Positions 3,401 through 6,400 of a stretch of 64,000 nt of DNA are shown piece by piece. The DNA is taken from positions 10,882,451-10,946,450 of the forward strand of contig NC_134035.1 of the NCBI RefSeq assembly GCF_964204645.1, given 5' to 3'. Origin of the DNA: Tubulanus polymorphus. Taxonomy: Eukaryota > Animalia > Nemertea. Position 1 is the first letter of the stretch; each line of letters opens with the position of its first letter. Under the pieces are notes generated by a model, which did not search any database, was not told the DNA's origin, and worked only from the letters and a program-made list of their open reading frames with translations. Position numbers and translations under genes: made by a program.

Positions 3401-6400
3401 TCTGTTAATCTGTCTCGAGTTGTGCGGACATCTTTAAGGAGCCACGCGGAGGGTTGTTCCGGAGGGTCATTCTCCTCTTGGAATAGTACACGGTTTGGTA
3501 ATTTGATATTTCGAGTTGTAAGAGTTACTAATGAATTCCATATCGAGCGAGCTAATTAGTTTTGGTTTTGAAATTCACGCCTTGCTAATGAATTGACAGG
3601 GGATACGAATCAGTGGTGGTTAGGAAGATTAATTCAGTGACGAATTTAATCGATGAGTCACATTATCATCAATGGACCACGAACGATTCGATGATTAATT
3701 AACTAACAATCGTGAACATTTCGTAGATATCTTGTCTAAAGAAAACCCTGTTCGATTACACAGAATCTTTCTTTCGGCAAATGGAATACTGCGATTGTCG
3801 TTTTTGCAAGAAACACGATCTTAGGCTTACGGACCCGTCTTAGACCACTTGGGCTCTCTAGCTAATCTGACAAAGTCCAGTCGTCAAAAACGACACAAGA
3901 TACCGCATCTAAGTTCTCTACTTCTTGGTTTGGAATTTCGTTCCGGATTTTTGTTAAGCGAGCGCGGTATTTCGACGCCTTGTCTAATAAGCTTCGAATA
4001 CGTAATCTCTAAACTAAATACCGGATCCAACTGACTAGAATCCTCGTCTGAACGTAGCTATATTCGACGAAAAAACTACACGTCGCTTTGATAGGGTAAA
4101 AGGGCGCCCGCCGTTAAGCCGGCTGTAATCGAGTACAACTTACTTCAAGCGTCATTAAACATAAAATGGCGATGCTCGCCAGGTGGAACGCGTGCGCCAT
4201 TTCTTCGAGGAGGTGCACGGTGTCGTCGTGTTTTTTGGTATGAGTAAAATCACAATCGCAAATATCACTATCGCGCGTGGCATTCGGGTCTAGTATCAAA
4301 GCCATCGTCGAATTGGAACAAGAGCAGCTGCTGCGGTTACGAGCGGGCGCCATCCCGTACGGTATCGTCGGCGGATGAGAATCAGACGTAGATGGCGCCG
4401 CTAACGAGTCACGTGATAGATCGCGATTAGCAGCCGCGGCCGCAATTTCGCGTTTATCATTTCTGTGATGTCCTGTAGAGTCTTTTTCGATCGCCCCGGT
4501 GTCGTTTCTAAGACTACGTCGCTCATACCGCCCCCTGGTGTCTTTTTCAAGTATCACAGATTGCGGAGGTAGAGATGTTTCATCCCCCGTATCGGACCCG
4601 TTTACTCTATCAACACTAGCCTCCCCCACGGCGGCTTCGCTTGGTCCACCGGTATCGTAAACCCGATCCTGTTCTTTGATTCCCGTTGCATTATAACCAT
4701 CAGCTGCTGCCCCCTGGTGAATAGTTTTTTTATTTGGAACGTTAGGGATATCGTCGTATTCGTCGAGCGCTCGTCTGTGTCGATCGTTGATATCAGCTCG
4801 CTCGGCGATATCATCGACGCCGCGCTGAAATAACGAAGCGTTTTCGGCGCGCGAATAGAAATTCCGCCGATTTTCCAATTTGTCAATTACGTCGTCCAAA
4901 GTTATCTCTCCGTGGAAATCTCGCAACGACGGATAATCCTGTTGGAGTATTCCTACCAGTTTGTGCAGCGACTGTTCGCCTTTGGCAAAACGTTCTGAAA
5001 AAAATACGTCAAAAATACATATAAATGGTTATTGATCTGTGGAAGCTTCGTATGTGGGTCTGACAACGATCTTCAATTAGAAAACTGCGCCTATGCTACG
5101 ATAGATTATTTCGACATATCCAGTTTACATTCCCATCAAATGCTCTATTGCATGAATAACAATAAATAACTCATTGTAAGTCTTAGACTTAAGCGCCATT
5201 TTGATAACTGGTGACGTCATGATCACGCGCGCGAGTTAGGTACCGGCAAACACTAGATGGCGCCACAATATTCATTGGGATATGCGTACTGAGCATCATA
5301 TCATTTTCGATGAAGATATCAGGCTTCGAATTCTTAATATCATCAAACAAGTCATCGAATGGAAATAAGATTAACTTTTTCACTCACAGATTTACTAATT
5401 CGAAAAGTTGATTCGATTTTAACTGAAATGTTTCAGCGACTGAAGTTGCCACTAGCGAACCTGGCGGATAGTCACGGAATCCACGCCTGCCGCTGTAGCG
5501 GTGCCGGGGTACCTCATAGAAGGCATGAACGTAACATTAACAATTTCCGGGGATCCGTCGTGTGAATAACCACCAACACTAAATCGTCATCTGGTGAAAA
5601 AGTGCGTGTTCTATTGTGGGCACGTTGCATTTCCGGTATGGAAAACGCGTATGACTGGGGTCACTGTGGAGGCTTGTTAGGAACGCGAACAATAATAAAT
5701 CGGTATAAAGATTGCCGCCGCGGTCGATGTAGTGAGTGATTTTTTATGTCGTTATCACCCGTTGTCACCCAATTTCCCCCGAGCGTCTCGTAGCTATTAT
5801 ACGTCCGTGACCGATACAAGTGTGCGGCAATTTGTACACGATACATATACATCTACATCGGATTTGTTAATCGATTGATGCAATAAATCCGCGAGAAAGA
5901 TGGATGCATATATTGACCAGACGTCGGCACCATCTTAGTAAAGAGACCCCTCCGGCAGACGGACAGATATCAACATATATATATAACCAAAGTAGTTAAC
6001 GATAGTAAACTGGATAGATCGTGAAATGCCAAGTGTTATTTGAACGCCAGACTTTTTATGAAATCGTTACATTTTATGCCCGCTAAATCGGTGCTGTCGG
6101 CATACCAAGTGAAAGTGTGGGGGGAAAACAATTAGCAGTCGAAATCGTCTATCAAATTCTCTGATTTTGATCGCTAGAAATCCGGCTTTAAACATTAGTT
6201 TCGGTATTTTCGGCAGTTTCTGTACAAATGAAATTTCATCATGGGAAAATTATGATTATGAACATGTACACATATATTTCTAATCAAAAGAGTGATATTT
6301 CAGTTAATTCAGTAAAACGTTATACGCCGTATGGTAATCATGGCAAGGGAAGTCTTTTTGTGGTGCCGAATTATTACCGCAGCTTAAAGGGCGATTACGT

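Follow-up and report, generated by a model that had tools for sequence, protein, structure and literature searches.

A conserved furin-type motif in the extracellular loop of a nemertean proton channel suggests, without proving, that channels of this kind are cut into two chains during maturation. The gene lies on the minus strand of a 64,000-nucleotide stretch of the Tubulanus polymorphus genome (RefSeq assembly GCF_964204645.1, contig NC_134035.1, forward-strand positions 10,882,451 to 10,946,450), which we call the window and whose numbering is used below unless another contig is named. It encodes XP_074660947.1, a 655-residue protein of this palaeonemertean that is publicly annotated as 'uncharacterized protein' and that, judged by its sequence, is an HV3-type voltage-gated proton channel paralog with a giant ectodomain between helices S1 and S2. 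The proposed convertase site in that ectodomain is the strict R-X-R-R motif RHRR (residues 130–133, positions 4771–4782), followed by ALDE and aligned with polybasic sites in another nemertean, Lineus, and in the annelid Owenia. On balance we lean towards the view that this site is cut after R133 in vivo by a furin-like proprotein convertase.

The assignment to the proton channels draws on both structure and sequence. Residues 318–480 found as their best solved-structure matches the Hv1 entries 5oqk (E 3.8e-9) and 3wkv (E 1.5e-7), above calcium-channel sensors. In a BLASTP comparison with the genome's own canonical Hv1 paralog (39% identity), the S1 match ended at residue 56 and the S2–S4 match started at residue 323, with 7 residues in the canonical protein between the points that flank an insert of ∼260 residues in Tubulanus. 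This bears out the earlier note on the window, which had described an S1–S2 loop of ∼260 residues in a proton channel; we place the loop at 260–266 residues and the cytoplasmic tail at ∼250. The sensor is a stand-alone S1–S4 unit, AlphaFold2 modelling no membrane helix beyond S4. Throughout the tool-analysed sample of 15 HV3-type sequences, D42 (in VVLDAAMV, the equivalent of Asp112 of human Hv1) is invariant, as are P398, W399 and R400 of S4. The S4 motif itself, LPWRVIR (encoded at 345–313), has the form xPWRxxR, in which the first arginine is lost and a proline stands before the tryptophan; this motif, together with a giant loop, is how AcHV3-type channels are recognised in the literature (PMC10911540, PMC10377628), and for the relative AcHV3 a proton-selective, voltage- and pH-dependent conductance has been shown by patch clamp (PMC10911540). 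Pfam found no family either on the loop exon or on the whole protein, Ion_trans staying below threshold on XP_074660947.1 because the loop splits the domain.

A single exon (4994–4144, minus strand) encodes the entire S1–S2 ectodomain (residues 59–323) and the first half of S2 (residues 324–342). It is preceded by a tttttttcag acceptor and followed by a gtaagt donor, lies within an open frame of 304 codons, and its in-frame translation of 283 residues is identical to residues 60–342 of XP_074660947.1. A retained intron or pseudo-exon was rejected in view of that open frame, the identity to the annotated protein and the existence of an ortholog, and a transposon or foreign insert in view of the absence of any family match and of the exon being single copy in the 268-Mb genome, where the locus sits on the chromosome-scale contig C11. 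A word-index protein search with this exon gave no match, and an exhaustive search of 1.84 billion representatives found no relative besides the protein itself; a weak match (E 1.3e-4) to a 2133-residue repeat protein was judged spurious. The lack of detectable relatives for the exon indicates that most of the loop evolves too fast for recognition. Searching with the full protein recovered an ortholog from Lineus longissimus (47% identical, covering 96% of the length), three HV3-type paralogs from Owenia, HV3-type proteins from nine named molluscs and one further bivalve-like protein; a word search restricted to residues 318–480 contributed only four new relatives, so that the sample stands at 15 sequences in all. 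Four Lineus isoforms differ at the N-terminus only, so the loop is constitutive in Lineus.

The basic motifs of the loop are where the earlier note had placed them, with RHRR at 4782–4771, RYERR at 4530–4516 and the KR of DKRE at 4455–4450, together with ENRR at 4875–4864 and an acidic tyrosine context, DEYDD, at 4764–4750. The idea that such sites are conserved in the face of loop divergence held for RHRR followed by alanine, aligned in Lineus and Owenia although the spacer beyond it is 21% identical, and failed for ENRR, RYERR and DKR. BLASTP sets DRHRRA of Tubulanus over HRNRRKRKR-G of Lineus; MAFFT places in the same columns as RHRR the Lineus polybasic site and the Owenia sequences HRRKR-G, RPRRSRR-S and LMRR-A, the small residue being followed by L-[D/Q]-E or similar. 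RYERR and DKR, on the other hand, face unrelated residues in Lineus, and ENRR lacks an arginine at P4 and lies inside a helix predicted by AlphaFold2. Of the sulfation-like context only the acidic surroundings stood: the tyrosine is a phenylalanine in Lineus (ETFDD) and is missing at the equivalent place from the printed sequence of the Notospermus ortholog, and conserved tyrosine sulfation was rejected. A tyrosine with four acidic neighbours within two residues on either side has a P of 0.006, in a test picked after the site had been seen.

In molluscs the motif takes a regular form. Saccostrea, Gigantopelta, Biomphalaria, Plakobranchus, Candidula and Elysia all carry H-R-x-[K/R]-R-[A/S] 18–19 residues before the [T/A]HxFH motif of S2, in surroundings that vary, and the nemertean and annelid motif lies 122–191 residues from S2 in sequence. 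The shared pattern H-R-x-[K/R]-R-[A/S/G]-[L/I] makes it plausible that the mollusc site, before S2, and the nemertean and annelid site, after the N-terminal module of the loop, are homologous. Further examples were read by eye from the supplement of PMC10377628: RFRR-S and RRRKR-SEE in the AcHV3 loop, KRRKR-E at the equivalent place in the Notospermus ortholog, VRRKR-AAA before S2 in a second large-loop paralog of Notospermus, RSKR-H and RRKR-Y in Eisenia, and RRRRKR-SAPP before S2 in the bryozoan Dendrobeania; one Aplysia paralog, as printed, has HHRVRAA, which is not a strict consensus.

Of the 15 HV3-type loops, 10 contain the strict motif R-X-[K/R]-R, where per-loop shuffling predicts 0.81 (Poisson-binomial P 3e-13); in 9 of the 15 the motif has A, S or G directly after it, where 0.19 is predicted. 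With strict scoring P1′ is A, S or G in nine of the ten motif-bearing loops, and in Lineus the glycine follows the last arginine of the polybasic run. When each lineage is given its most permissive chance value, the presence of the motif in five of seven lineages has a P of 7e-6. This tally speaks for over-representation and retention of the motif, not for cleavage.

The site also occupies a distinctive place in the anatomy of the loop. Residues 59–125 (4795–4994) form a helical N-terminal module, consisting of an extension of S1 past the membrane and a second helix that contains ENRR, and recognised from the AlphaFold2 model, from identity to Lineus (49% over residues 59–98) and from alignment across nemerteans, the annelid and molluscs; its alignability in all three phyla marks it as a conserved module rather than disorder. 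With a 15-row alignment AlphaFold2 carries the S1 helix (residues 29–78) ∼20 residues past the membrane and models the second helix (91–125) with a predicted local distance difference test (pLDDT) score of 60–72, the helices overall scoring 60–88. Residues 126–310 are modelled as coil with pLDDT below 50. RHRR comes five residues past the second helix, where the disordered part begins; at the site the coil scores 40–51 and the model is weak. A single-sequence model of the loop exon was uninformative (mean pLDDT 43.5), and the 15-row alignment improved the helical parts only. Beyond the site, residues 134–290 (4300–4770) make up a fast-evolving spacer, predicted to be disordered (coil, pLDDT below 50) and N-glycosylated, that contains DEYDD, RYERR, KR and five of seven N-X-S/T sequons; residues 146–290 are 21% identical to Lineus, with many gaps. 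The ectodomain ends in a Cys/His-rich segment before S2 (residues 291–323, 4201–4299) with paired C-x-C motifs, 57% identity to Lineus and a histidine, H314, that is invariant in the 15 sequences. For comparison, Tubulanus and Lineus are 100% identical in S1, 69% in S2–S4 and 96% in the proximal tail.

All seven sequons listed in the earlier note (NAS, NAT, NGS, NDT, NRS, NST and NAT) were found in the loop. They are enriched there, with 7 against 1.96 expected (P 0.001) in 20000 composition-preserving shuffles of the Tubulanus loop alone; 7 of the 14 asparagines in the loop lie within sequons, compared with 0 of 6 elsewhere in the protein, and across the family sequon density is 2.11 per 100 residues in loops and 0.40 in the rest of the proteins. 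Taken with the topology of a voltage sensor, this enrichment supports a lumenal or extracellular, glycosylated loop.

R130-H-R-R133 followed by alanine, a permissive P1′ residue, conforms to the convertase consensus, and the Tubulanus genome holds eight matches to the convertase P-domain (PF01483) above the curated cut-off. A voltage-sensor domain is regarded as one chain folded into a four-helix bundle. In the mechanism that we propose, a furin-like convertase would cut the channel after R133 in the late secretory pathway, yielding an S1 chain of ∼133 residues, with S1 and the helical module, and a second chain made up of the spacer, S2–S4 and the tail. Both chains would stay anchored in the membrane, and non-covalent contacts within the helix bundle would keep them associated. 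All four cysteines of the loop lie C-terminal to RHRR, and no disulfide is therefore available between the two ectodomain parts in Tubulanus. As the earlier note had also supposed, we infer that cutting could bear on maturation or gating of the channel. ENRR, RYERR, DKR and the acidic tyrosine are best explained as incidental features of a charged, disordered spacer.

A number of observations weigh against cleavage. Taken by itself, the Tubulanus loop has no more basic sites than chance would give (P 0.24–0.38): in the same shuffles R-X-[K/R]-R is observed once against 0.27 expected (P 0.24), dibasic pairs number 6 against 4.6 (P 0.30) and RR numbers 3 against 2.1 (P 0.36). The shuffle null behind the family tally takes no account of shared ancestry, nor of the way in which basic residues naturally cluster in disordered regions; homology between the mollusc and the nemertean and annelid sites cannot be proved, and the sequences from the supplement were read by eye alone, from a machine-read PDF that contains visible errors. 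Nor is the motif universal, being absent from Octopus and, by eye, from the HV3-type protein of Lingula; non-strict sites stand in Mya (KR-S), in Mercenaria and one bivalve-like protein (R-S-V-R-S) and in one Owenia paralog (RR-A). The AlphaFold2 model has low confidence around the site. Finally, AcHV3 is presumed to be a channel of intracellular membranes (PMC10911540), and a protein retained in the endoplasmic reticulum would not meet furin.

Conservation of a polybasic patch might have a non-proteolytic basis in an ectodomain that stays uncleaved, glycosylated and mostly disordered: the patch could, for example, interact electrostatically with lipid head groups or with the acidic outer vestibule, or serve to bind a partner or sulfated glycans. 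The fixed spacing of 18–19 residues between the mollusc motif and S2, beside a His-rich segment, could reflect a structural or a metal- or pH-sensing element; a strict motif is missing from several members of the family, and the same four-residue pattern recurs in cytoplasmic tails, in molluscs as an RRRR-S-S block, a place where a convertase site is impossible. AcHV3, moreover, conducts protons when expressed and no processing of it was reported (PMC10911540), although that paper contains no western blot, leaves convertases unmentioned and so is silent on processing. What has been retained, however, is the exact convertase consensus, with arginine at P4 and P1, a basic P2 and a small P1′, in a context predicted to be lumenal, disordered and glycosylated and with flanks that vary freely, and the long separation from S2 in nemerteans and annelids makes a fixed structural contact with the sensor less likely. 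We hold an uncleaved ectodomain to be possible, albeit rather unlikely. It is improbable, by contrast, that the motifs are functionless chance products of an Arg/Asp-rich, neutrally drifting insert. Such drift would fit the shuffle-expected frequency of every basic-motif class in the Tubulanus loop, the lack of conservation in Lineus of three of the four sites named beforehand and a spacer without detectable relatives beyond the ortholog, but it is already disfavoured by the family tally (the strict motif in 10 of 15 loops and five of seven lineages, far above expectation); BLASTP and MAFFT, in addition, agree independently on the position of the site in nemerteans, MAFFT extending this to Owenia, and there are more cases in Aplysia, Eisenia, Notospermus and a bryozoan.

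The earlier note had further raised the possibility that the loop sheds soluble peptides. The loop would then act in the manner of a prohormone precursor, with cuts at several basic sites freeing bioactive or inhibitory peptides, as in the dual cleavage of the epithelial sodium channel (ENaC). Two strict sites would bracket a tract in AcHV3 (RFRR and RRRKR, ∼45 residues apart), in Eisenia (RSKR and RRKR, ∼100) and in Notospermus (∼11), and furin-driven release of inhibitory tracts is established for ENaC (PMC9163703). The Tubulanus loop, however, has neither a prohormone-like layout nor any sign of a soluble product. It holds one strict conserved site, its remaining basic sites being the unconserved RYERR and DKR and the helical ENRR without its P4 arginine; it contains no repeated peptide units, no Gly-basic amidation signals (no G-K-R or G-R-R) and no conserved segment between candidate sites, and a single cut would leave both products anchored in the membrane. 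A neuropeptide precursor was rejected in view of the single conserved site, the lack of repeats and amidation signals, and a spacer only 21% identical to that of the ortholog. Release of several peptides from the loop seems to us very unlikely, tract release as in ENaC being conceivable only in relatives with two strict sites. A single cut after R133 is the reading that we favour. It may be extended, more doubtfully, to the proposal that convertase cleavage is ancestral to the large-loop proton channels of lophotrochozoans and obligatory for their maturation, with gating or leak dependent on the cut, release of an inhibitory tract in two-site members such as AcHV3 and Eisenia as in ENaC, and a partial contribution of the processed form to the unusual leak and weak voltage dependence that were recorded for AcHV3 in mammalian cells competent for furin; we regard this as speculative and would not expect all of it to hold.

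The remaining exons of the gene, all on the minus strand, were checked one at a time against the public protein XP_074660947.1; each of them, translated in frame, is contained in its sequence, and their order is as expected. Exon usage was deduced from open frames, splice signals, the public gene model and conservation in the ortholog. The coding part of exon 1 (18575–18624; start codon at 18624) supplies a short cytoplasmic N-terminus, residues 1–16 and two bases of codon 17, matches XP_074660947.1 and is followed by a gtaag donor. The S1 exon (9055–9179) encodes residues 18–58, comprising a basic stretch before S1 and the S1 helix with the selectivity-filter aspartate D42, and ends in phase 1 (...IIR G) before gtgagt. 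In the same helix the S1 glutamate of Hv1 (VLAELILD) is replaced by an invariant glutamine (VIGQL) throughout the HV3-type set. The outer half of S2 (residues 324–342, 4144–4200), identified by the alignment and by BLASTP against the canonical paralog, carries the invariant histidines H326 and H329. At the position of the charge-transfer-centre phenylalanine of Hv1, three before the conserved S2 glutamate, Tubulanus has a methionine (LMTLE, 4144–4160), mollusc relatives mostly a leucine and Owenia a methionine or valine. The inner half of S2 and the S2–S3 turn (residues 343–360) follow at 2043–2096, with splice sites and a match to XP_074660947.1.

The S3–S4 exon (313–451) encodes residues 361–406, with a translation matching XP_074660947.1 and the HV3-type S4 motif, with its two arginines, at 345–313. 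Both nemerteans and all three Owenia proteins have the S4 proline motif (in Tubulanus at 313–345); a 2023 review describes the proline as missing in Annelida, Bryozoa and Nemertea (PMC10377628). Its presence in nemerteans and Owenia means that the HV3 signature would predate the group of molluscs, brachiopods and phoronids. The exons of the C-terminal tail sit before the start of the window (C11:10872451–10882450). There the proximal cytoplasmic tail (residues 411–500) is more similar between Tubulanus and Lineus than S2–S4 (96% against 69%), and it holds a block retained across phyla (GLCRKHGA...AC), an RRRKSS site and the hydrophobic stretch MSTMASLALIGVIGN.

Two further Hv paralogs are found in the same genome. 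The canonical Hv1 paralog (C2:24883873–24887001, minus-strand open frame 1450–2028) has S1–S4 in one frame, a short loop and the full S4 motif RLWRVAR, and gave us an internal control for insert size. The third paralog lies ∼1.3 Mb away (C11:9549000–9558999) and has the S4 sequence ILILWRIVR, with no first arginine and no proline. Its S1–S2 loop of ∼100 residues, on a minus-strand exon at ∼4701–5183 of that stretch, has three sequons and a tribasic site, QRRR-L, that is not a strict furin consensus; an intron at ∼6370–6840 contains a long TA-type dinucleotide microsatellite, read as YIYI repeats in all frames.

Large loops in mollusc Hv paralogs, which the earlier note had mentioned, are known: the S1–S2 loop of AcHV3 has 299 residues and was described as lacking obvious organisation (PMC10911540), and a review of the HV3 family reports S1–S2 loops that are very variable (PMC10377628) and contains no occurrence of 'furin' or 'cleav'. 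Relative to the searchable literature, then, the giant loop is already known, and what appears to be new is the conserved N-terminal module, the conserved convertase-type motif and the idea of a split sensor; that literature holds no natural voltage sensor split between S1 and S2 by secretory-pathway proteolysis. HV3-type or 'unconventional' channels are a large and functionally puzzling family of lophotrochozoans, and the conserved site offers a concrete handle on loops that have been called unorganised. If the site is cut, protease activity would be linked to proton flux in acidic or secretory compartments, and biophysics would gain a natural split voltage sensor; if it is not, the conserved polybasic patch would still mark a functional element in a loop thought to have none.

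The closest known system is AcHV3 itself, the one characterised HV3-type member, which shows a proton leak with almost no voltage dependence (Chaves et al., FEBS J 2022, PMC10911540). It shares with the Tubulanus protein a four-helix sensor without a pore domain, the S1 aspartate, the S4 motif xPWRxxR, a very large loop (299 against ∼260 residues) with strict furin-type motifs, and a long cytoplasmic tail whose helix continues from S4. The Tubulanus protein, however, is nemertean, and its loop cannot be aligned with that of AcHV3 outside the N-terminal module and the motif elements. ENaC is likewise an ion channel with a furin consensus in a glycosylated extracellular region, and its processing in the secretory pathway affects open probability (PMC9163703; bioRxiv 10.1101/2024.02.12.579964). 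Its fold is unrelated, and it needs two cuts, which release an inhibitory tract from a folded domain, whereas in Tubulanus a single conserved site lies in the disordered loop of a voltage sensor and a cut would separate S1 from S2–S4; the ENaC mechanism is proven and the Tubulanus one is deduced from sequence. A different kind of cut is that of Hv1Sper (Berger et al. 2017), in which a sperm serine protease reportedly removes part of the cytoplasmic N-terminus and S1–S4 stay one chain. Hv1Sper, cited as reference 13 in PMC10911540 and the only case of Hv proteolysis cited, is a post-translationally cleaved human Hv1 with altered pH- and voltage-dependent gating, and it provides a precedent for proteolysis affecting the gating of an Hv channel. 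Unlike the Hv1Sper cut, the putative site in Tubulanus would be a lumenal, convertase-type site within the S1–S2 loop.

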